This document shows, piece by piece, positions 1,897-60,244 of a stretch of 64,000 nucleotides of DNA. Every line of letters starts with the position of its first letter. The stretch's first letter is position 1. Under the pieces are notes generated by a model. The model saw nothing but the letters and a program-made list of their open reading frames with translations, was not told the DNA's origin and did no database searches. A program made the position numbers and the translations under genes. This DNA comes from Zygnema circumcarinatum SAG 698-1b (lineage: Eukaryota > Plantae > Zygnematophyceae). The stretch covers positions 930,001 to 994,000 of the forward strand of contig CM074811.1 in the NCBI GenBank assembly GCA_037447605.1, given 5' to 3'.

Positions 1897-4800
1897 ATGG
1901 CGGCCAGGGACAGCCTCAAGGAGGCCGGGAGGGTCTTTAAGGGGGAATGTACCCTCGAGAATTCTGCCGCTGACGTCATGAAGGGGGATGATGCCTTTGC
2001 AGACGCCATGGCTTGGCTGGAAAGGGGGGAGGGAGGAGATGGGGGGAGCAATAAGGGAGAAGAGGGAGGGGGGGTTGTCGAGGGAGAGGGAGAGGAGCTA
2101 GTTGGTGGAGAGGAAATTCTGCGAGGAGAGAGCTGTGATTCAGATGCTGCGTTTGAGAAGAAGGACGGGGCGCTAGGAGAAGTGTTGGACATATCGCCTT
2201 TGAGAGAGGACCTGTCTGAAGGTTTGACTCAGGATGGCTTGTCTGGGAATTATTCTGATACGAAAGAGATGTATTTGTATGACAACTCGTTTACAGTTGT
2301 ACCGGGAGATATTGGCAAATTCTACAATATGAGGGTGCTGAAACTGTTTTCAAACCAGGTATTCGCCGTTACCAAGTGCGCATGCACAGCATCTCTCAAT
2401 ATGGTTGAAGAAAGGCCGCTTCGCTCACAACTCCAATTGATTAGGGCGTGATTCTCCTGCGTATTTTTCACCTTTTCTACTCCTCTTCCCTTGTAGAAAA
2501 TCAAACTCCTAAGTGCCTTGTCATACTTATATTGCATAGTCTATTAGCGGGCTGAAATAAACTATAAATTATTAGCAAGACCTACACGAGCTGAGCAGGC
2601 CGAGGTTTGACTATGCACTGCAGGTAACTCTGCTCCCTAAGGAAGCTGGAAAACTTACCAACTTGGAACAGCTGTATGTGAAATCGGATGCCACCACTCT
2701 AGCGCAGCTGCCTTCTCTTGGTGGCATGACTTCTTTAAGGTCTCTAGAGCTCCATCAAGTTCCGGCGAGGCCCTCACATTCCGTTCTTCCGCCAGACATC
2801 AGCAAGCTCAAGCATTTGCGGAAGCTGGCTGTCTGCAATTACTCCATAACGTGAGCGAAACTCCTATCGGTCTGTTTAAGTCATTATCAGGGGTTTTTGC
2901 TTCTGTTCGTAACAGGAATGGGAAAGAAAGGCTATGACTTCTTCGCTCTGCACGCAGTATGCGGCTGCAAAAAGTGATTTCGAATCAGCTAGAGGACAGC
3001 TGTGGAAGGGTTATTACTTATAAGTTTACTTATAAGTTTGAGAGGTCCGGTTTCTGTTATGGCGTTGTTGAAAATTCTTTATCGCTACAGTTTCTTTCGT
3101 TCACGGCCCTTTCGTTCTCACCAATACCAATCCAAAGTTGCCTACTTTTTCATTGTATCCATGGACGGAGTAGGTCTTACGTAAGTGCCTAATGTCTTGT
3201 TTCTAGCGCCTTTGCAGTTCTATGCCACCAGAAATCGCGAGTCTCTCTTCCCTGGAAGAGCTGGATTTATCATTCAACTCTTTGGCAATCCTTCCCGCAG
3301 AAATCTCCAACCTGAAATCTTTAACAAGCTTGAACGTATCCAACAACAAGCTCGAATGCCTGCCTGCCGAGCTCTCCAGTCTCGCACAGCTCAGGACCCT
3401 CGATGTTGCCAGTAATTTGTTGACTTCCTTGCAGAGCCTGGTTCTGTCATCAATGACTTCCCTGACGACACTAAATGCACAGGTGCAAACCTTTCTTCTC
3501 GAGGCTATTTCAGAATAAGTTTTCTGCGGTCTTGCTTCCTTAGTGTGCTGTGCTAATGACCATCTTCTTTCGCATCTTTTCACAAGTTGCATATGCAACA
3601 ATGATGTAAGGGTTAAGGGTGATTTTTGAGACTTTTTTTCTTGACGGGGTCGTGCATGTATTGATGCTTATTTTTGTGTCTGACATTTTGCGGCATTTTG
3701 GTGTACAGAATAATAATATTGCGAAGGCTGAGGAGATCCCCCACTGGCTACAATGCAACCTGGAAGGCAACGGCTGGATAATGCTAGGCAGTGCCGGCAG
3801 TCCAGGATGCGAAAGTGACGAAGGTGGTGAAGTTTTCAATTCCTCAAAGGTCTCACCAGGTGAGACTTGATTAAGCAACTTGATTTGCTGGTGTTTCATC
3901 CTTCGCCTGATTTTTGGAACGGCAGAATCAATCAATACAATTGTGAGATTTGCCGTTTCAATCCTTTGATAGGCAGTTATTTTTCAATGCACAGTCATCC
4001 TTTCTTTCCCGATTTCCGTCGTTTGGGGCAGAGGTGCCTGTTTTAACGACTTCACGAGTTGGATGCTGTCTGTGGCCATTCATGTTGACCTTTCAGTAGG
4101 AAGGGTAAAGCCGTTTTCTCCGCCTTCAAATGCTGCGGGAGAGCAGTCGTCTAAACCACCTGGGTATTCTTTGCATAGTTTCCGTCATCAAACTAGCCAC
4201 GAACGGCTGAATATTAGCAGAGTGGCGGAAGTCGAACAAGAGCGGATTGCTGACATCAATGTAGAGAGGAGTGAAGTGCGAGAAATGGAGCTACAGGGAG
4301 TGTTGTCAAGAAAGCCCACTCGACTTAGAGCAAGCTTGAGACCATACTACCAGGCAGAAAATCAGATTGAGGAAACGTCTTGCTCGTCCTTGGATAGCAC
4401 TTCCCACAAGGACTTGCTCGGAAATGGTATGACATCCAACCACTGCAAAACAACAGACAGATTTGTCTCTGCTTAGTAGAGGCAGCTATGCTACAATGTG
4501 CTTCAATTCTATTTAAATGAAACATGTGTGTAATGTGCAGCGGACAGAGTCTTAGTGACAGCGTGGAAGCTGGTTGTTTTTAATCCTCCAAACGCAGGTT
4601 GTGTGCTGTATATGTAGTTTAAAAGACTGGGTTGTAACATAGGAGACACAGTTACAGGGGCAGTCATACTAATAAGCTATCTGCAAACGCATTGGATCTG
4701 ATGCAGGTTTAGTCACACGGCTTGGGAGGCGGCAGAGTCATGGAGTTGATATCAGTACGAAATCTAGTAAACGGCGCCGTTGGGTTGTAAGCAATTGCGA

Positions 4801-42945: not shown

Positions 42946-43792
42946 CGCTCTCCCCCTTCCCCCTTCTCTATTCTTGTGTGTTGACAGGGGGGGAAGAGGA
43001 TCGGGGCAGCCTCCAGTGCATCCTGACCTTCAATTTTTTCGCGACGATTAAATCAATTTTTCTTCGGACCTCCCCCGAGGAGAATAGAATCTGAGCAAAA
43101 TTTAGCTCTCCGGCGCCTTCGTTCTTCGTTCGGATTTTTTTACCCGTATGGAAGGAAACCCCTTCCAGAAGATGGCCCCCATCGTCGATCGGCCGCGATT
43201 TATCGGCACGAAGGCTTATACAGACTGGTAATTTTGGCGATGACAAGCGGACTTCGAAAAGGGTTTGAGAGAGTTTGTAGTAAAGGCCAATATGGAATCG
43301 AGCATGCGGATAAGCGCGATGTATCAAGGAGAAAATAATGAACCCAGGCCAAGGTTTGGCCATTGTAGCAGGTAGCTTTGTACATATCTGACAGTACTTG
43401 AGCTGTACTTTTAGTTGTACCGTACCATACTGTACTGTATTGCTAGTTGGTGTCTAGTCCTCCCTCACATTTCAAAAGAATTCCCTTCCGCAAATGTTTC
43501 ACCTAAGGGCTGTGAAGTCCTTTGGTTGCCAGCAAGCTATGTGCAAAGCAAAAGCACTCTTTTGGTGTCATGGTTTCCTATGAGTGTCGAATTTAGATGG
43601 ACTGTAATCTCTCAACTTACATTCCGTTAGTCATGAAGAAGCGAAAAGTGAAATTGAGACTCTCCGCACCCAAGACGGAGATGCAACTTGTCAAAAAAAG
43701 AAGTAATTTCCGAGTATCGTATGGCCCCACCAAGTTCGTGCATTCATGTCAGCTGCAGCGGAGCAAAACTGTCGGTTATTGCTCGGGAGCAT

Positions 43793-43864
43793 TCCGTTGC
43801 CGGGATTTGAACCCGGGTCGCTCGGGTGAGAGCCGAGTATCCTAACCGACTAGACTACAACGGA
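43793..43864 (-). tRNA. tRNA-Glu (anticodon CTC)
   Basis: Reverse complement TCCGTTGTAGTCTAGTCGGTTAGGATACTCGGCTCTCACCCGAGCGACCCGGGTTCAAATCCCGGCAACGGA, 72 nt. Acceptor stem TCCGTTG/CAACGGA, anticodon arm CTCGG-CTCTCAC-CCGAG, T-loop GTTCAAATC, AT-rich upstream region. Confidence 0.97.
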
Positions 43865-46748: not shown

Positions 46749-49700
46749 TCAAGGAGAACGGCTCGGGGGGGGACGTCGAGGAGGGGGTCGACGGCTGGGA
46801 GGAGGTTTATGTGGAGGGGGCCTTTTCGAAGGGGGCGGAGGACGGGGAGGAGGGGATCGTGAAGCTGCAGAAATGCAGGGCACTGTGTAAGTTCCCGTTC
46901 ATGATTAAAGGCGAACTAACTTCTTCCATAACTTTCATATTCTATTTGAAACACGTCCTTATAGACGTTCTGGGCGGATGCAGAACGAAATAACTTACTT
47001 GAAGACTTGTGCAATCATATTTCATCATCTATGTGCATCTCAGGCTATATGCATCTCCACGGACAATTAGATTCCTGTGTCATTTCTCCGGCTATTAAAT
47101 TTTCTCTTTGGAAAGCAAAAAAGTCAAACTCGCAGCTTTTCTAGCTATTTCCAAATGGAGCCGAGATATGTTGTAGCGTGCATGGGATTGGATTGGGTCG
47201 AGAAAATTATTGAAAGCTTAAACCATGATATCAGAGCAGCACTCGATATATCCTAATAAACTCTGCACCATTTTCTAAATGGGCTTGCAGAGTTCACCAA
47301 GTAGTACTTGCCGTGTGCTTCTAGAAGGTCGAGAATTGAATCTCCTCTATTCGCGGCGTCAAGTGGATCACATTCAGTGTGCTCTAAAAGCAACGACAGT
47401 GCAAAAGTTGATAGCAATGCGATACTCTCCACAACCTATGCCACTCTTTTCTTCACCTTCCTTGCGAGTACCTACAAGGAGCTGTTTGCAACTCACCACA
47501 CTTGCCGGATGCCAGCGCATATCCCTTGTCGCATGTACACGTGGCCGTGTCGTACCCGCACGTGCCGCGGCCCCCGCACGCTCCCTCGGGAGAACCGCTC
47601 TGGCAGAAGGCCGCGCACTGTTTCTTAGGTCTCTGCTTTTGAGCTGCGCCACATCCTGTGACATCACGATAAATGCAGTTGTTTGTAGTACTGAAGGAGC
47701 AATAAGGATCCCCATATGTTGTAATGTCGATTGGCCCGGAGAAGTAGTTGTCTTGGATCCTCACTTCATAAATGCCATGGCTCGAAAGAGTTATGGAGCC
47801 AGTAAACTTGTTGTTGTCCAAGTACCTGATGACATTAAGGGTGGAGGAAAGAAAGAGAGAAGAACATTCCAACAGAACCCGTTCAAGTCTTCTTGCTGTC
47901 ATAGCCACTGAAAACATTCGCTTGTGCTGTTTGCAAAGACTCTTACTCCATCTTTACGACCCTACACAACCTTCAGCCTTCAAACACTGAAGCCCTGAAT
48001 CTCTAAGCAGCGATGCAGCTGTAGCGAAACGCTACAGTCACCCCAAGGGGGAAGGGTTACTTAGAGCCCGGCGTGGCTTTATGTTTCCATCCAATGCAGT
48101 ACCTAACGGTTAGGGCATCGGATACCCTATAGGACCACGGAGGTCCTAGGTTCGAACCGTAAGAACTGGTTCACACGTGGGGGCACCACATAGTCACGAT
48201 GCGCCCCANNNNNNNNNNGTTACCTTCTTGCGACCAACTGTCCCCCCCTCCAGTGGGTAAGCTTTGCTTACCCAGCACTCAGAGGAGCCGCATACCGTGT
48301 GTATGAGGGCCTCTCTGATGAGATTGGGGACGATTGGGATAAGTTCAGAGATGAACTTATCAAACACTTTGGGGCCTTGGATCCCGGCTTGGAGGCCCGG
48401 GATAAATTTCAGAACATGGTCCAAACCGGCAGTGTCAAGCAGTTCCTGCGAGACCTGCGTCAAGTGGTCCCTCAAATCACCACTCACAAGCCTGGTCAGG
48501 CTGAGTTCTTTTTCCACTTCAGGAATGGCTTGAAGCCACACCTGAGGAAGCAGCTGAGAACTAACCCACGGACTCTGAAACCGTGGGACCCCGCTGACTC
48601 TAAGCTGTACTTTGATGCAGCCATTCAGTTGGACACCGCCCCTGCAGGCGATGCAGGCCCTTCCCGACCCCAGCAGAGGTCGGGCGACGTGACAGGGTCG
48701 TGGAAGGCGGGACCCTCAGCTCCTGCCAAACTGGCAGGAAAGAACAAGCGGAAGCAGCCGGAAGTGGCTGCCCGCCCACCCACTGCACGGCCGCAGAAGT
48801 TGACTCCAGAGGAAATGGAGAAGATGCAGCGGGAGAACAAGTGTTTCCGCTGCCGCAAGGAGGGGCACAAGGCCCGGGATTGCCCTCTGAACACCAAGGA
48901 CAAGAAGGGCAAGGGGCCGGAAAACCCCAACCCACCAGCAGCTTAGGGGTCGTTGCTGGTGGACATGCTAGGCTAGGGGGAGGGAAAGGGGCTGCCATCA
49001 AAGATAACAGACTATTGTTTCTTAGAACCTTGGACATTCTTAACTTGGTGGGCAGACCTTTGGGAGTGCAAGATCTCTTTGTGTTTGATGTACTTCTTTT
49101 TTCCATTTCTCTTTCCCCTGCCACTATAGTGACTCCTTCTGAGTTTATGGTTGTGGTGATGCATGGTCAATGGAATGTGTTTATCCTCAATGTTATGGGT
49201 AATGATGTCTTGGTGAATTGTGCCATGGAGGCCATGCATGTCATGCGGGACACATCCCATATNNNNNNNNNNNNNNNNNNNNNNNNNNNNNNNNNNNNNN
49301 NNNNNNNNNNNNNNNNNNNNNNNNNNNNNNNNNNNNNNNNNNNNNNNNNNNNNNNNNNNNNNNNNNNNNNNNNNNNNNNNNNNNNNNNNNNNNNNNNNNN
49401 NNNNNNNNNNNNNNNNNNNNNNNNNNNNNNNNNNNNNNNNNNNNNNNNNNNNNNNNNNNNNNNNNNNNNNNNNNNNNNNNNNNNNNNNNNNNNNNNNNNN
49501 NNNNNNNNNNNNNNNNNNNNNNNNNNNNNNNNNNNNNNNNNNNNNNNNNNNNNNNNNNNNNNNNNNNNNNNNNNNNNNNNNNNNNNNNNNNNNNNNNNNN
49601 NNNNNNNNNNNNNNNNNNNNNNNNNNNNNNNNNNNNNNNNNNNNNNNNNNNNNNNNNNNNNNNNNNNNNNNNNNNNNNNNNNNNNNNNNNNGCCCCCATC

Positions 49701-51416
49701 GAGAGGGGTGGGGCACACATCCCTCTTGAGCCTGAGCAAAAGCCGCCTTGGCGGCCGATCTATCGGTTAAGTCCGAAAGAAACCGAGGAGATGCGAAAGC
49801 AGTTGGCAACTTTACGTGACAAGGGCTAGATAGAACCCAGTCAAAGCCCCTTTGGGGCGCCCATCTTGTTCGTTGGGAAAAAAGATGGCTCGTTGAGGAT
49901 GTGCATTGTCTATCACTGGCATTTCTCTGTTTGGCATTACTCTCATTTTTATGAAGGGTAAATATACTTACAAGTATTGCAGAGCCAAAAGGTTGCCGAG
50001 AGAATCCGGGATACGCCCCGTTAGGGAATTTTCTTCCAAGATTCTGCCCAAAAAAAAAAAAGGGCACTGAATAAATATGCTGCCACGACAAGCATTTCTA
50101 TCACTGGCATTTCTTTCTCTTTTAGTTCAGATTTATGGGGAAAAATACTTACAATTCTCGTAGATTTGTGAGGTTGCCAATAGAATCCGGGATAGACCCC
50201 GTTAGGGAATTAGAACCCAAGCTTCTGCCAAAGTTAAAAAAAAATGAAAAATAAAAAAGGGCACTGAATAAACATGTTGCCACGAATAGCACTTCTATTA
50301 TTGGCATTCCTCTGTTTGACATTTCTATCTCCTACATTTCAGATCCATGGGGAAAAATACTTACATTTCTTGCAGATTCGCAAGGTTGCCAAGAGAATCC
50401 GGGATAGACCCAGTTAGGGAATTAGAAGAAAAGGTACTGCCAAAAATAAAAAAAACTAAGCACTGAATAAGCGTGCTGCCACGACTAGCATTTCTCTCAC
50501 TGGCATTCCTCTGTTTGGCATTTCTATCACTTTCATTTCAGATTTATGGGGGAAAATACTTACAAGTAGATCAGATTCGCAAGGTTGCCGATAGAATCCG
50601 GGATAGCACCCCTTAGGGAATTTTCACGCAAGTCTCTGCCAAAAAAAAAAAAGGGCACTGAATAAACATGCTGCCACGACTACCATTTCTATCACTGGCA
50701 TTCCTTTGTTTCGCATTTCTATCGCTTTCATTTCAGATTTATGGGGAAAAATACTTACAAGCCTTGCAGATTCGCAAGGTTGCCAATGGCAGGTGAAATG
50801 CTTCCTTCAACTCCGGAGCCACCTAAAATACTGCATAAAGTAGGTTAGCAGTGAGAGCGTCAGAAGAAGAAAGGGCCGCGGGCAGTAGAAGGACTGCTCC
50901 TGGCGGCCCTTTTTAGCCACTTTCTGAGGAGGCTTCTTCCCGCTGAACCCTCCTCGCAGCCTCGGCCTGCAGTTCCGCAGCTATGGAATCCACGGAGCTC
51001 TCAAATATCACAAGCGGTGATTAGTAAAAGTGTAGCTCACAGCGAAGTAACGCGCCCACTTGCGTCGCATGTGATCCAACGCCATTTGCTGCAGCTAGTG
51101 CTACTCGCTTTCCAGGAGGAGAGGAGTCCTTGTCCGTTGGTGAATGCCGATTTGAAAGCGAGAAGAGCGGTCCCTGCGCCCAAGCGCGAGCAGATGCAGG
51201 ATTGGATTGAGGCCGCGGTCCGCTTCAAAAAGCACAAACAGAGGCCCCGCCGCGGGCAGGCCGCCTCTCCCCTTCTTCCATAGAGGGCGGGCGGGCGGGC
51301 CGCGGCGGCTCACTGTCTCGCGGGTCGATGGCCTGAGCGGCGGCTTCGCGCGGGGCGGCGGCGGCGGCAAAGAGGAGGAGCGCCGCCGCGAGAGAGAGAG
51401 ACCGCGCGCGCGCCAT
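46749..51416 (-). CDS. Secreted LRR protein: signal peptide + LRRNT_2 + LRRs + Cys-rich/EGF-like domain + Arg/Pro-rich tail (about 346 aa, 9 exons, no TM, no kinase)
   Basis: Exons 51314-51416 ([28 protein letters not shown]..), 51041-51173 ([35 protein letters not shown]), five 72-nt exons (50759-50830, 50564-50635, 50365-50436, 50153-50224, 49972-50043), 47497-47825 ([46 protein letters not shown]) and 46749-46864 ([20 protein letters not shown]). All junctions are GT-AG, phases are compatible, and the total of 1041 nt is a multiple of 3. Confidence 0.85.
48020..49908 (+). mobile_element. Degenerate, truncated Ty3/gypsy retrotransposon inside intron 7 of the LRR gene (antisense)
   Basis: Gag ORF 48299-48946 ([29 protein letters not shown]; zinc knuckle [14 protein letters not shown]). 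RT N-terminus at 49691-49908 ([49 protein letters not shown]) with an in-frame stop and an abrupt end. Assembly gap at 49263-49690. Putative LTR start TGTAGCG near 48020 is tentative. Confidence 0.85.
49263..49690. other. Assembly gap (N run); 10-N gaps also at 9801-9810, 45965-45974, 48209-48218 and 55014-55023
   Basis: Direct reading. Confidence 1.
49909..50788 (-). repeat. Tandem array of about 4.5 intron + LRR-exon modules (period 181-212 bp)
   Basis: Minus-strand donors GTAAGTAT at 49971, 50152, 50364, 50563 and 50758. The introns share GAAATGCCAGTGATAGAAATG..GTCGTGGCAGCA..TTTATTCAGTGCCC-polyT-GGCAG. Confidence 0.95.
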
Positions 51417-55259: not shown

Positions 55260-58200
55260 TCACCCCCGTGATTCCTCCGCTTTCGACCTCTTGGAGCGAC
55301 CCAAAAATCCTGCCACGCCCTGTTTCCCACCAGGAGCAGCTCCTAAAAAGCTAAAACTCGAGAGTCCAAACTCCAACTGTTTCTGTGGGACGCCTCCCTT
55401 AGGTGAGTCGTGAGAAGGTCCGGAGAAGCCACTCCCATTGGCTGTCAGAAGGACAGTGGTAGGGGTGGCAGCAGGAGAGAGAGTCTCTTGCGAGGACGCA
55501 GGAGAGGAGATGGCCCCTCTCTGTGTGATGACTCCCAGGCGATCACCTCTAATGCTTGCCCAGGAACGAGATGATTTATTACTGCCAATGTTCTCGCAGT
55601 CATCCATCTCGATGTCAACAGCTGATAGAGGAGAGGTCACTCGTTTCCCTCCCACTTTCTCCTCCTCCGCCATGGACTCGGAGAGGAAGCCTCCCGTATC
55701 ATCTGCTGAGTTATCTCCCAAAGTGACTGGTGGATGCGCTCTGTTTCGTGACCTCCTGCTATTTGGGGTGTGGTAGTATGCATTCACCTTACTTTTGCTT
55801 GTAGAGGAGGGCCTCCTTGACCCTTGGGTTGGAGTGAAACTCTCGCTGTTGGGTCTCCTTGGTGGGAGTGGGGAAGGTCTGCTCAGCCTGCTCTCTCCTG
55901 CCATCCCTTTCTCTGAAGGGCTGTACATTGGCTCTGAGAGATTGCTTCGCGCGGGAGAGCGGTTGTAGGACAGGGATGGTAGGAGGAGCTGCTCTGTCGA
56001 GTGGCGGCTGCTGGAAGTGGAGAAAGCAAAGTCCTGCAGCGTGACGGAAATATTTGTGAGTCTTCTCCAGTTGGACGTTGGAATCATAACCGTAACCGGA
56101 GCTATACATAGAAAGAATTGAGTGGACGTAAGTTAAATACGTCTGCTGACACGGCGGCCTTAACGAGCATCGTGTGTACTTTTTCAGATTGTAATGAAGT
56201 GAAGGACTTTTTTGAGGAGCTTATTATACATCACCAGTGTGAACTGTCTAACTTTTCCAGCTTAATGTTTCAGCGCACTCTTAACAGAGGGGCTTAGTTC
56301 TTTCTCGATAGAACCACAACCAAATCCCTCTACCATAGTACTGTTTTGCAAAGGATTAAAGTGCTGGAGGTCGCGTTGAGTGTTCGAGGAAAGAATCATC
56401 AAAACTTAGATAGAGAAATGAATCCATGAAGGGTGCCGTTAGACCCGTGGTACACAGAATTGGAGGTAGCCACAGCTAAGGACACCAATTTTAGGGCTTT
56501 AAGAAATGCACCTTTGAATCTACTCGCCCTCCATTGAACATTCCCTCGCTCCCGACACTGCAGCATGAAAACCCTCAGTGTGAGTACTGCAGAAAGCTAA
56601 CTCTAGCAATTCCAACCAACAAGAACCAAATTCCCGACTCCCCACAACAAGTATATGTTACCCCATCATCTATGATTAGAGACCTTGTAGTCGAGCAAAA
56701 CTAGGCAATTGGACAATTGGAAAGGGCTGCAGCCACAAGTCTCATAAACAGTTCCGGAAAGGAGAGCCGCACCTGTCAAGCCCTTCTTGAAGCAGCCATG
56801 ACTTCACAGCCTCCCTCCTCTCCCTATCCAGATGGGAGTCATCCACAAGCGCATTCAACTTTGCCACAAGTGCACAGACTTCATTGTTGGCCATGTCGAG
56901 CCGGGAGCCAAGCTCTGCTCTTGCAGCGTTTGCAAGTGCAAGGTCCATATCCACTGTCAACTTTTCCTTATGCATCGCAAAAAGGCTCCTCCGAACTTCT
57001 CCAACTCTGCAATCCAAAATAGGATAAGTAATCAGTTATTCACCTTCGGAGATCTTCCACAAAGCCAAGTTTCTGTATCGGTGAAAGAAAAACGAAGGCT
57101 TTCTGCTCGTTTTGAGGCCGGACATTCTTCCTTACCTTGCTTCTGCTTCCACAAGTCTAGATTCCAGCATGCTTTCCCTCTCAGTCGCTGCCTCCAGCAT
57201 AGCACTGAGAGTGGCACTGTCAGCGTCTTGCCTCCCAAGCTCTGCTTGAAGCTGCTCTTTACTTTGACGCTCTTCCTCCAGCCTGCTCTCCAACTCAATA
57301 GTCCACTGTGCTGCGGCTTCAAGCTCAGCATTTATCTCTTCCTCAAGAGACTCTGTTTCACTTAGCGGCCAGCTCGGATTCACACCCGTTAGATTGAGAT
57401 TATTTCCAGTTGAGTGACAATGATCCTTTGCAAATTTCTGGCCCTCGGCGTCTCGGCTAATCTCAAGCTCATTTGCCCTGTCCATGTTGCCTTCACGGAG
57501 TGCTTTCACCTCAGCTTGATAAGAAGCTGCTTCACTTTTCAACCCTTGCACCTGCAATGAGATCCTCAAAACCGCAGCACGAGCAAGCTTCAATTCTTGA
57601 CTTAAATTCTTCTTGTCAGCTTCAGCTGACATCAACATGTCTTCAAGTTCAGTGAGCTTTGCATCGGCTTCATGCACTTGCTCGCGCAAGTCTTCAACTT
57701 CAGTCCCAGCACCCACCAATTCCGTGACCCTGTTCTGAGCCCAAGTAAGCTCTGCCCCTAATTTCGCTGTTTCACTTCTCCACTGCGCCAATTCGTTTGA
57801 AAGTTCCACCACCCGCTCCTTCGAAGCAGCCAGCTCGCTTTGAATGTCGTCCTTACCGTCTACCTCCTTTGATAGTGAAGAAATGGCCAATTGAGCTGAC
57901 GCGAGCTCATCCTGCAAATCGAATGTCTGTGTTCTCCATTCCGTTAGCTCGGTAGAAAGATCGAGTGCCTTCTTACGGGCAGCTGCAAGCTCGGCTCTGA
58001 GACTCTCCCTTTCAGCAAGACCTTCAGTCAACTGCCCAACCATCTCCTCCACAGCTGCGAGGTCTTTATCAACATCAAACGTCTCCTGTTTCGACTCTGC
58101 CAGTTCTCGAGAGAGCTTTGCTATCTTATGATTGGCTGTTGCAAGTGCACTGGTCAGCTCATCAGCATTGTCGGAACCGCTCCTTTCCTGTCTCAGGTTC

Positions 58201-60244
58201 TCCTGTTCTTTCTCAAGTTTCTCACAAGTCTGCTTGTATCCTCGCGTTGGCAGAACAGCATCAACTTCATCTGGAGATTTGGAGTGATGACCATTCGAAC
58301 GGTCGTTCTCTTCATCTGCTTTTCTCAGATTCCGAACTTCTTTACTCAACCGATTCATCTCCTCCTTCGCCAAAGTGAGCTCCTGCTTCATCAGACTTGC
58401 CTCTCTGGCAGCTGTTACCGATTTGTTTTCAGCCCCAGTCAAGCGACCGCTCATTTTTCCTAACTCTCCTTCTAACAAGGCTACAGCCTCTTCACCACGC
58501 TTTTTCTGCTTTGAAGTTTCCTGAAGCTCCTTTTCTAAGACTGACAAACTGAACGCCAGCTTCTTGCAGGCCAAGCAAGGAATATCCTCGCCCTCTTGAG
58601 TATGTTCCTTTTCCGCGTCACTTTTGAAGTATTCCACACTTTCTCCGATGACTTTGATTGGTTTGCACACCTTCTCCTCCACAATGGAAGTTTTATCAAT
58701 TTGTTTTTGACTATCATTCTCGCCAGCTTGAGTGCGACCCTTGCTTACATGATCTACCAAAGCCAGGCTACCAAAGTAACTGCTCACCTCAGCCACATCT
58801 TCTTCCACGGTTTGCTTTACATTAGTATTGTTTTCGATTGCCATCGCCATTTCAATTTCTGCATCTTGACTTTCCCAGGGGTTTGTATCTTCAGACATCA
58901 TCATGATCAGACTGATCTCTTCAAACATTCTCAGGTCTCCAGCAGAGGGACTTGCGGGAGTAGCGCCATCGTCTTCCCCTGTTCCCTTGAACATCGCTTG
59001 TTTCAGTGTCACTAGTTCAGTCTTCTCTTTTTCAGCCTCCTTTAACCTTGACCTTAGCTGGTCAACCTGTTTCTCCATATCTTGGATTATCAAGGCCCTG
59101 TCTTCCAATACGACCACCATAGCATCCATCTCAGTCTGCATCTCTGTGAGCTGATTCTCCTGTTCAGTAACAAGCGCAGATAACCGACTCACATCGGCTT
59201 TCAACTCAAGTTTCTCCTCTGCAACATCCTGAATGCGACGAGCCTGCTCATCACGAACACGGCGAAGTTCTCGGATAGATTCCTGCAAGCAGGATGCCAT
59301 TCACAGGTAATGTAAGGAGAAAGAAAAGAGAGAATGAACACGGCAAAGGTGATAAAGGTTGACATTCAGGTGTATCTCTCAGAGCACAATGCAATCCTAA
59401 TCTGATACTTTAAGTGCTGAATTACTGATCAGCATATCAGTGTACAGATGCGGTAACTGACAGCTATGGACCCATCGTAAAAGAGCATGTACATGACTTG
59501 GAAGAGACACAGACAGAAAAGCCACTTCAGAAGTGGCCTTTTAAGTCGCCCAAAGGACTGTCCACTTTTTTGGTGAACAGATTGTGAGCATCTGGAAATG
59601 CTAAGGAGTATGAAAGCTAATCAAGCAGGTAACGAACAGAACAAACTCTGTAGCAAACAAGCACTTGTCGAAAAGATACTACGAGAGAGTGCGTAGAGAT
59701 ATGACAACCAATCTCTCTCTCAATTCTCAATACATACTTTCAACGCCGAGTCGAGACGGGCTGCCTTCCTCTCAGAAACCTCCTTTTCTTGCAACGCCTG
59801 CTCCAGCTGTACTTTTAAGGCTGTTGATTGTGCTGTCGCCTTCTCCCATCCTGCATGACCGGACAAGGGATGCTTATCATTATAGTCAGACAGCTTCAGC
59901 TTTCCTTTCCAGCTCTCTTTCGTTCTTCAATCCTGTCTTCAGATAGGCATTCCATTGCAAGCAAATTCCCCGTTATATGCTCCAAATTCAATAATTCCCT
60001 GCCATTGCACATCTGTTATTTAAAAGTTACAAGCACCTCCAAACTTGCAGGGGAAGAAAGACTAGTGCTGATCTAACAATCCTCACAATCACTCTATGCC
60101 TTGCAAAGGATGGCACCGACCTGTAACCGCTGCTTCCGCCACCTTCATGTGTCGAGAAGCTGCGTCAGTAGCACTCGCTTCAACCTCAGCCGAACCATCA
60201 TCAACCGGCTTCGTAACGCTACTGCTCACTGCGGCAGCTTCCAT
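55260..60244 (-). CDS. FPP: Filament-like plant protein (FPP, DUF869 family), multi-exon coiled-coil
   Basis: RHMKVAEAAVT|GWEKATAQSTALKVQLE..RKAARLDSALK|ESIRELRRVRDEQARRIQDV matches the FPP signature (KVAEEAV.GWEKA; LD.ALKEC.RQLR..R.EQ). Exons ..60121, 59738-59850, 57136-59282, about 56.77-57.0 kb, and a last exon ending at 55260. Start codon uncertain. Confidence 0.85.

Follow-up and report, generated by a model that had tools for sequence, protein, structure and literature searches.

A tandem array of 72-nt leucine-rich repeat exons in Zygnema circumcarinatum combines closely similar introns with divergent codons on the predicted binding face

Introduction

Exon arrays in which each exon encodes a single leucine-rich repeat (LRR) have been described in the ROCO (LRR-ROC-COR) genes of Ectocarpus and kelps, where every LRR occupies one 72-nt phase-2 exon, exons have been duplicated and shuffled, concave positions are under positive selection, and the arrays have been proposed to diversify candidate receptors (PMC3341825, PMC11378527). 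In land plants, the LRR receptor-like kinases (LRR-RLKs) of subfamily II (SERK/NIK) are laid out as a signal-peptide exon, an N-cap exon and a series of one-LRR exons (PMC7496461; also PMC5296948 for the SERK/ERECTA type). Here we describe a tandem array of five 72-nt LRR exons on the minus strand of a 64,000-nt stretch of the streptophyte alga Zygnema circumcarinatum SAG 698-1b (assembly GCA_037447605.1, contig CM074811.1, positions 930,001 to 994,000), which is called the window below and to which all coordinates refer. A first-pass annotation of this DNA had proposed that what looks like a satellite is in fact an array of one-LRR coding exons, and our results bear this out; they point to a secreted plant-type LRR protein whose exon-plus-intron modules were probably duplicated recently and whose predicted ligand face appears to have diverged under selection.

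The locus resembles the brown-algal ROCO arrays in carrying one LRR per 72-nt phase-2 exon, in having expanded by exon duplication and in an excess of change at its concave-face positions, which was established here by count tests. Unlike the ROCO genes, which encode cytosolic GTPase receptors with another LRR consensus, it would encode a plant-type LRR protein that is secreted and carries an LRRNT_2 cap, and its putative downstream exons give a Cys-rich/EGF-like module and a Pro-rich tail in place of a ROC-COR domain. The parallel with SERK/ERECTA-type genes, already drawn by the first-pass annotation, stands for the exon layout, with a signal peptide in exon 1, a Cys-pair N-cap in exon 2 and then 24-residue one-LRR exons of the same LRR consensus, but it does not extend to the protein, since our model lacks a transmembrane helix and a kinase domain and ends in a proline-rich tail with its stop at 46749. 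The second exon of SERK genes probably measures 133 nt as well. A further difference lies in the introns, which are old and dissimilar in land-plant LRR-RLKs and 84-94% alike in this array.

In plant LRR resistance proteins and PGIPs, the solvent-exposed residues of the xxLxLxx motif are under diversifying selection, with the non-synonymous rate (dN) well above the synonymous rate (dS). The locus shares with these proteins a conserved scaffold bearing hypervariable concave beta-strand residues, but there the comparison is between alleles or mostly intronless paralogues, whereas here tandem exon copies within one gene are compared, with their own introns as the yardstick. The locus on its own adds no new mechanism, and the receptor evolution it exemplifies, although clear, is of an already known kind.

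Results

The LRR gene model was read on the minus strand, with the ATG placed at 51416. Exon 1 (51314..51416, 103 nt) contains this ATG and a hydrophobic, signal-peptide-like N-terminus, judged as such by eye, and is followed by a predicted GTGAGC donor at 51313; exon 2 (51041..51173, 133 nt) encodes an LRRNT_2 N-terminal cap with a Cys pair (Pfam LRRNT_2, residues 32-71). Then come five exons of 72 nt, each of phase 2-2 and each encoding one LRR, namely exon 3 (50759..50830, LRR 1), exon 4 (50564..50635, LRR 2), exon 5 (50365..50436, LRR 3), exon 6 (50153..50224, LRR 4) and exon 7 (49972..50043, LRR 5). All five are flanked by a ...GGCAG acceptor and a GTAAGT donor, and both their coordinates and the five peptides quoted in the first-pass annotation were reproduced exactly. 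Retention of any array intron brings in a stop at the second codon, so the array introns are real introns, and open frames and consensus GT-AG sites are kept in all seven upstream exons. The exons being symmetric in phase, any subset of them keeps the reading frame.

The spliced product of exons 1-7, of 198 residues, matches LRRNT_2 (E = 1.8e-9) and LRR_8 (E = 9e-21) in Pfam, and its 24-residue repeats follow the plant-specific consensus LxxLxLxxNxLxGxIPxxLGxLxx. The closest solved structures are plant LRR ectodomains, led by GSO1 (E = 1e-140) and FLS2 (E = 1e-130) and followed by MIK2, PEPR1 and ERL1, while a protein search with the 198-aa fragment returned generic LRR matches only, at no more than 57% identity. 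If exon 7 splices to the putative exon 8 described below, the full model amounts to 346 aa. We consider it reasonably probable that an ordinary nuclear gene has its LRR-coding part here and that its product is a secreted protein of the plant type with seven LRRs, a judgement that takes in, jointly, the recent duplication and the diversifying selection discussed in the following paragraphs.

The array repeats with a 199-nt period over 50247-50786 (Tandem Repeats Finder), and a repeat search placed the copies at spacings of 181, 212, 199 and 195 nt, which correspond to 72 nt plus introns of 109, 140, 127 and 123 nt. Intron 3 (50636..50758, 123 nt) is 91%, 88% and 94% identical to introns 4, 5 and 6, respectively. 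Intron 4 (50437..50563, 127 nt) contains three 15-nt sub-repeats, intron 5 (50225..50364, 140 nt) has a longer poly-T tract and intron 6 (50044..50152, 109 nt) has lost one 15-nt sub-repeat; this loss and changes in poly-T length are among the differences between the introns. The first 63 nt of intron 7 (49909..49971) are homologous to these module introns although more diverged, and the homology ends at a retrotransposon junction. When one module was compared with the window by BLASTN, matches were confined to the array and ran from 50787, in the middle of exon 3, to 49903, in agreement with the repeat register proposed earlier. The duplicated unit, of about 200 bp, therefore comprises the last third of one exon, an intron and the first two-thirds of the next exon; only the 3' third of exon 3 (from about 50787) lies inside it, the 5' part lies outside, and exon 3 is only about 50% identical to the other array exons.

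Pairwise identity is 84-94% among introns 3-6 and 71-82% among exons 4-7. Within the 64-kb window, the intron consensus and the exon backbone match inside the array only (0 matches expected from shuffles), and searches of the window by tblastn and blastn recovered no LRR modules or relic exons apart from the array, exon 8 and an unrelated cytosolic-type LRR region at 2167-3518 (+); the reverse-oriented or intronic relic LRR exons that are typical of ROCO loci are thus not found in this window. The backbone codons (AAT TCC CTA ... ATC CCG GAT TCT ... GGC AAC) are nearly invariant even at synonymous sites, which indicates that the copies are young and are not old exons with rejuvenated introns. 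Among the modules just five sites are parsimony-informative, four of them being consistent with one and the same topology. The best reading of these data is that whole exon-plus-intron modules were tandemly duplicated recently, as the first-pass annotation had supposed, the mechanism of duplication being a matter of interpretation. We also considered an introner-like mobile intron and rejected it: the intron consensus occurs in the array only within the 64-kb window and always at the same LRR codon position, and module duplication is the simpler account.

For the analysis of divergence, the spliced sequence was cut into 24-codon units of the form L-x-L-x-x-N-x-L-x-G-x-I-P-x-x-I/L-G-x-L-x-x-L-x-x. 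Variation sits at unit positions 2, 4, 5, 23 and 24, the x residues of the xxLxLxx beta-strand, on a backbone that is otherwise nearly invariant, just as had been noticed at first sight. In LRR proteins these x residues lie on the concave ligand face. It is the codon at unit position 1, for the leading leucine of the LxL core, that the intron interrupts; positions 24 and 2 lie on either side, and the exposed residues therefore straddle each splice junction.

The five exposed codons show a pairwise proportion of non-synonymous differences (pN) of 0.66, with 13 of 15 columns variable among the four full modules, whereas the rest of the exon gives a pN of 0.15 and a proportion of synonymous differences (pS) of 0.20, with 17 of 57 columns variable, and the introns differ pairwise by 0.065-0.165, with 24 of 108 columns variable. 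Exposed codons differ from introns with p = 1.9e-6 (Fisher) and p = 2e-7 (binomial), while divergence elsewhere in the exon matches that of the introns (p = 0.34, Fisher); change at the exposed codons is about 5 times that of the introns in raw terms and about 12 times after multiple-hit correction. These are count tests and not codon-model likelihoods. The first-pass annotation had named an excess of non-synonymous change at the exposed positions among the points by which its idea of diversification would stand or fall, and a strong excess, over introns and synonymous sites alike, is present. Replacement at the exposed codons thus indicates diversifying selection for what would be new binding surfaces.

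Evidence from reads was taken from assembled contigs (Logan) of DNA and RNA-type runs; besides the contig joints listed, to which the statements below refer, there are a further 76. In the DNA runs, the bins of the exon backbone, intron 3 and intron 4 lie at 20-70 times the depth of the unique flanks, and position 50515, in intron 4, is covered by 28 and 43 distinct DNA contigs at about 30 times that depth, from which it follows that the exon-plus-intron module exists in tens of genomic copies. In two independent DNA samples from different studies, depth is single-copy-like in the bins that contain exon 7 and its flanks and in those of exon 5 and intron 5. In the RNA-type runs the exon-backbone bins are deep, intron 4 is about 20-fold lower, and intron 2 lies about 50-fold below exon 2 (X20).

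Each of the joints listed connects one stretch of backbone to another across 12-20 other letters, which exactly fill the 72-nt register. The joints listed are paralogue transcripts in which consecutive, different LRRs are spliced at homologous sites, and among them we found neither the exon 3-7 junctions of this locus nor any skip. Further downstream, exons 8 and 9 are joined in the predicted register (46865 to 47503) in an RNA contig that shares about 96% identity with the locus and stems from an allele or a paralogue, and the exon 8 acceptor (47826/47825) is used by a paralogue-like RNA contig whose upstream sequence is a different LRR exon ending in ...LWYL. The in-frame join of exons 7 and 8 would read ...LQYL-YLDNN..., against ...LWYL-YLDNN... 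in the paralogue contig. This copy would be expressed and, most likely, constitutively spliced.

Two other contigs should be recorded. One contig, the second of two that reach intron 1 (the first is taken up in the Discussion), tracks this intron as far as its 3' end (51174/51172), beyond which its sequence is unrelated. In the other, a DNA contig, the opening bases of exon 4 are connected to the backbone of exon 7 (50030 / 50629) across 6 other letters, encoding ...DLSSNSL..., at a depth of about 286 in X5 and about 15 in X1; it may represent a module or paralogue that differs between strains.

No match to Rfam at E <= 1 was found in the array introns, the folding z-scores of four of them (+1.0, -0.4, +1.1 and -1.4) are ordinary, and RNAalifold detected no covarying pairs in them. 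On these three grounds, a structured or known RNA in the introns was rejected. By these measures, nothing points beyond ordinary short introns in the array, alike through their youth. A mutually exclusive exon cluster of the Dscam type, in which each mRNA would carry a single exon of the cluster, was rejected as well, there being no conserved pairing or covariation in the introns and the paralogue transcripts carrying consecutive LRR units. The germline layout of VLR-type cassette assembly, an incomplete gene beside donor cassettes that have no splice sites, is not what is seen here either: the germline array is already a complete open reading frame with consensus GT-AG sites at every unit.

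Downstream, the array adjoins transposon debris and assembly gaps at 49908/49909, a circumstance omitted from the first-pass annotation. A truncated Ty3/gypsy-type reverse-transcriptase fragment, recognised by translation (49692..49908, +), carries one in-frame stop and is cut just before its DYRALN motif, so that intron 7 meets the middle of the fragment and not a long terminal repeat (LTR); other genomic copies of the element run past 49908 with sequence encoding DYRALN, as seen at contig ends. The fragment is followed by a gap of 429 N (49263..49691) inside the putative intron 7, by a retrotransposon gag with a CCHC zinc knuckle (48221..48943, +; Pfam Retrotrans_gag E = 2.3e-8, zf-CCHC E = 5.8e-6), which is of very high copy in DNA reads and gave no relatives in the protein search, and by a second gap of 10 N (48209..48218). 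A short repeat at 48020-48159 carries a tRNA-like B box (GGTTCGAA) and reaches 50-100 times unique depth in DNA runs; it occurs in RNA contigs too and is probably a tRNA-derived short interspersed element (SINE) within what would be a long intron 7. At the junction (49903-49915), the letters AATGC are common to the expected continuation of intron 7 and to the antisense transposon sequence; this is more in keeping with a real microhomology-mediated rearrangement than with an assembler join, although 5 nt could be shared by chance.

Beyond the debris lie two putative exons on the minus strand. Exon 8 (47497..47825, 329 nt) is in frame with exon 7 and encodes the final two LRRs together with a Cys-rich cap and an EGF-like module, whose similarity to EGF in Pfam is weak; exon 9 (46749..46864) supplies a basic tail rich in proline (RPPP), with the stop codon at 46749. 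With the retrotransposon fragment and two gaps in between, the putative link from the array to these exons is unproven. In a representative protein library, relatives of exon 8 were found at 31-52% identity on short intronless transcript contigs, and a metagenome scan returned none. The C-terminal Cys pattern of exon 8 (N-x-F, C, N-C, C, Q-R, C-A-A-F-C, C-G-G-H-G-x-C, C-x-C-x-x-G-Y) is common to the secreted LRR/Cys-rich/EGF-like proteins P0123, P0126, P0130, P0139, P0135 and P0124, which also have LRRs upstream, P0124 having a proline-rich tail in addition; the identity to this set is only 35-45%, however, and its members are known only as unnamed transcript or metagenome predictions. Membership in the LRX (LRR-extensin) family was rejected. 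The match to LRX2 (6qxp) covers positions 2-74 and arises only with the last LRRs in the profile, the Cys-rich part alone giving weak EGF matches, and in place of the long extensin domain with Ser-Pro(3-5) repeats there is a tail of about 37 residues, of the basic R/K-P-P-P type with one S-P-P-P.

The remainder of the window contains other genes. A different, cytosolic-type LRR region (e.g. ...LEELDLSFNSLAILPAEISNLKSLTSLNVSNNKLECLP...) lies at 1897-3518 (+), and about 4.4 kb downstream of it, at about 7913 (+), is the only protein-kinase motif of the window, a catalytic loop HRDIKSSN ... DFS; together the two may make up a single LRR-kinase gene, of the type with LRR_8 + Pkinase that is related to Raf (PMC11096116). 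Other features are a tRNA-Glu (CTC) gene at 43792-43864 (-), scored at 67 bits by Rfam and also called by ARAGORN, and a 722-aa open reading frame at 57132-59300 (-) with only weak coiled-coil-type Pfam matches (GAS, NET2A_C).

Discussion

Starting from the anatomy of the array, the contrast in divergence and the multi-copy status of the module, the history that we favour is as follows. A unit of about 200 bp would have been copied in tandem several times in the fairly recent past, with unequal crossing-over or replication slippage as the probable mechanism. Since then the introns, the synonymous sites and the backbone (N-S-L-x-G-x-I-P-D-S-I/L-G-N-L) would have drifted by about 10-20%, while the five solvent-exposed beta-strand residues would have been replaced almost completely by diversifying selection. 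Splicing is most likely constitutive, with the LRR exons joined in succession; the locus belongs to a large family of modules in this genome, and retrotransposon debris would later have come to lie in the last array intron.

Several observations weigh against this history. Gene conversion and recent duplication are not separable here, with five parsimony-informative sites; the divergence contrast comes from only four full modules with few sites, and the pairwise comparisons are not independent. No listed joint belongs to the exon 3-7 junctions of the locus itself, and the Logan contigs break at the repeated backbone. The boundary of exon 1 and intron 1 (51239-51342) is covered unspliced, with two mismatches, by a 104-nt RNA contig at a depth of 1465 (X20), which could stem from a paralogue, from an overlapping transcript or from GC-rich low-complexity cross-matching. 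Finally, a truncated retrotransposon and two assembly gaps bound the array at one end, which means that truncation or a false join may have affected the gene and that the array may lack some of its modules.

The first of these points leads to concerted evolution, in which the LRR exons would be old, their introns and backbone kept alike by gene conversion within the array and with paralogous arrays, and conversions that overwrite exposed codons removed by selection. The tens of near-identical copies of the module intron and backbone across the genome suit this account, and there is a hint of mosaicism in that the 3' end of exon 3 is closest to exon 5, yet intron 3 is closest to introns 4 and 6. 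It would require, however, two precisely placed conversion-tract boundaries per module, and the informative sites are just five, four of which agree on one topology. Even so, the same diversifying selection would still be needed, and the difference from recent duplication would be one of history and not of outcome. We regard concerted evolution as rather unlikely.

Equally improbable, in our estimation, is a reading of the array as dead or truncated, the 5' remnant of an LRR gene that diversified before it was broken by a retrotransposon-associated rearrangement and is now a pseudogene. The abutment of intron 7 on the middle of a reverse-transcriptase fragment, the two gaps behind it, the lack of an RNA joint of this locus among those listed, and unspliced low-depth contigs over exon 2 and its flanks would all be expected of such a remnant. 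Against this stand the intact open frames and GT-AG sites of the seven upstream exons, an in-frame join of exons 7 and 8 that continues a perfect LRR as in the paralogue contig, and the integrity of exons 8 and 9; moreover, transposon fragments are common in introns.

The first-pass annotation had gone further and suggested a modular diversification system working through exon skipping or ongoing copy-number change. In its general form, this would be a regulated cassette system in which conserved introns guide the inclusion, skipping or mutually exclusive choice of LRR exons, or in which somatic recombination shuffles them. The uniform 72-nt, phase 2-2 exons and the unusually similar introns with their 15-nt sub-repeats invite such a reading, and alternative splicing of LRR exon arrays has been reported for brown-algal ROCO genes (PMC11378527). 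Unlike in those genes, no skip joint of this locus occurs among the joints listed; the symmetry of phase-2 exons makes skipping possible without being evidence that it occurs, and the paralogue contigs carry consecutive, different LRRs. The introns, for their part, have no Rfam match, unusual folding or covariation, and their copies are all direct repeats with no docking/selector pairing apparent. Their similarity is accounted for by the youth of the modules, the synonymous sites of the backbone being equally conserved, which counts against a cassette function. The suggestion thus found no backing, and we hold it to be very improbable.

It is just as remote that mis-assembly within a repeated gene family produced the tandem copies or the retrotransposon join, even with gaps flanking the contig and at most 51% of the sampled words of the stretch present in any public run, since the modules differ by 6-16% in their introns and at nearly all exposed codons, unlike collapsed or duplicated reads, and the single-copy-like depth of the exon 7 and exon 5/intron 5 bins in two DNA samples argues against assembly duplication.

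A broader conjecture goes beyond recent duplication and selection at this locus. The 72-nt LRR exon with its intron could be a genome-wide, still-active module family of this streptophyte alga, copied within and between many secreted LRR genes by true exon shuffling, which has been proposed for the brown-algal ROCO genes, with alternative inclusion of exons. We consider this unlikely, slightly more so than concerted evolution or a dead copy; if it were true, the alga would possess a fast-evolving repertoire of extracellular receptors or wall sensors, with an architecture different from that of land-plant immune receptors, whose LRR arrays are mostly intronless.

For the favoured history of recent module duplication followed by diversifying selection, the duplicated introns of the same gene serve as an internal neutral clock, against which the ligand-facing LRR residues have changed about 5-12 times faster. 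This suggests that secreted LRR proteins of this alga are pressed to recognise changing partners, which may be microbes, wall fragments or peptides.

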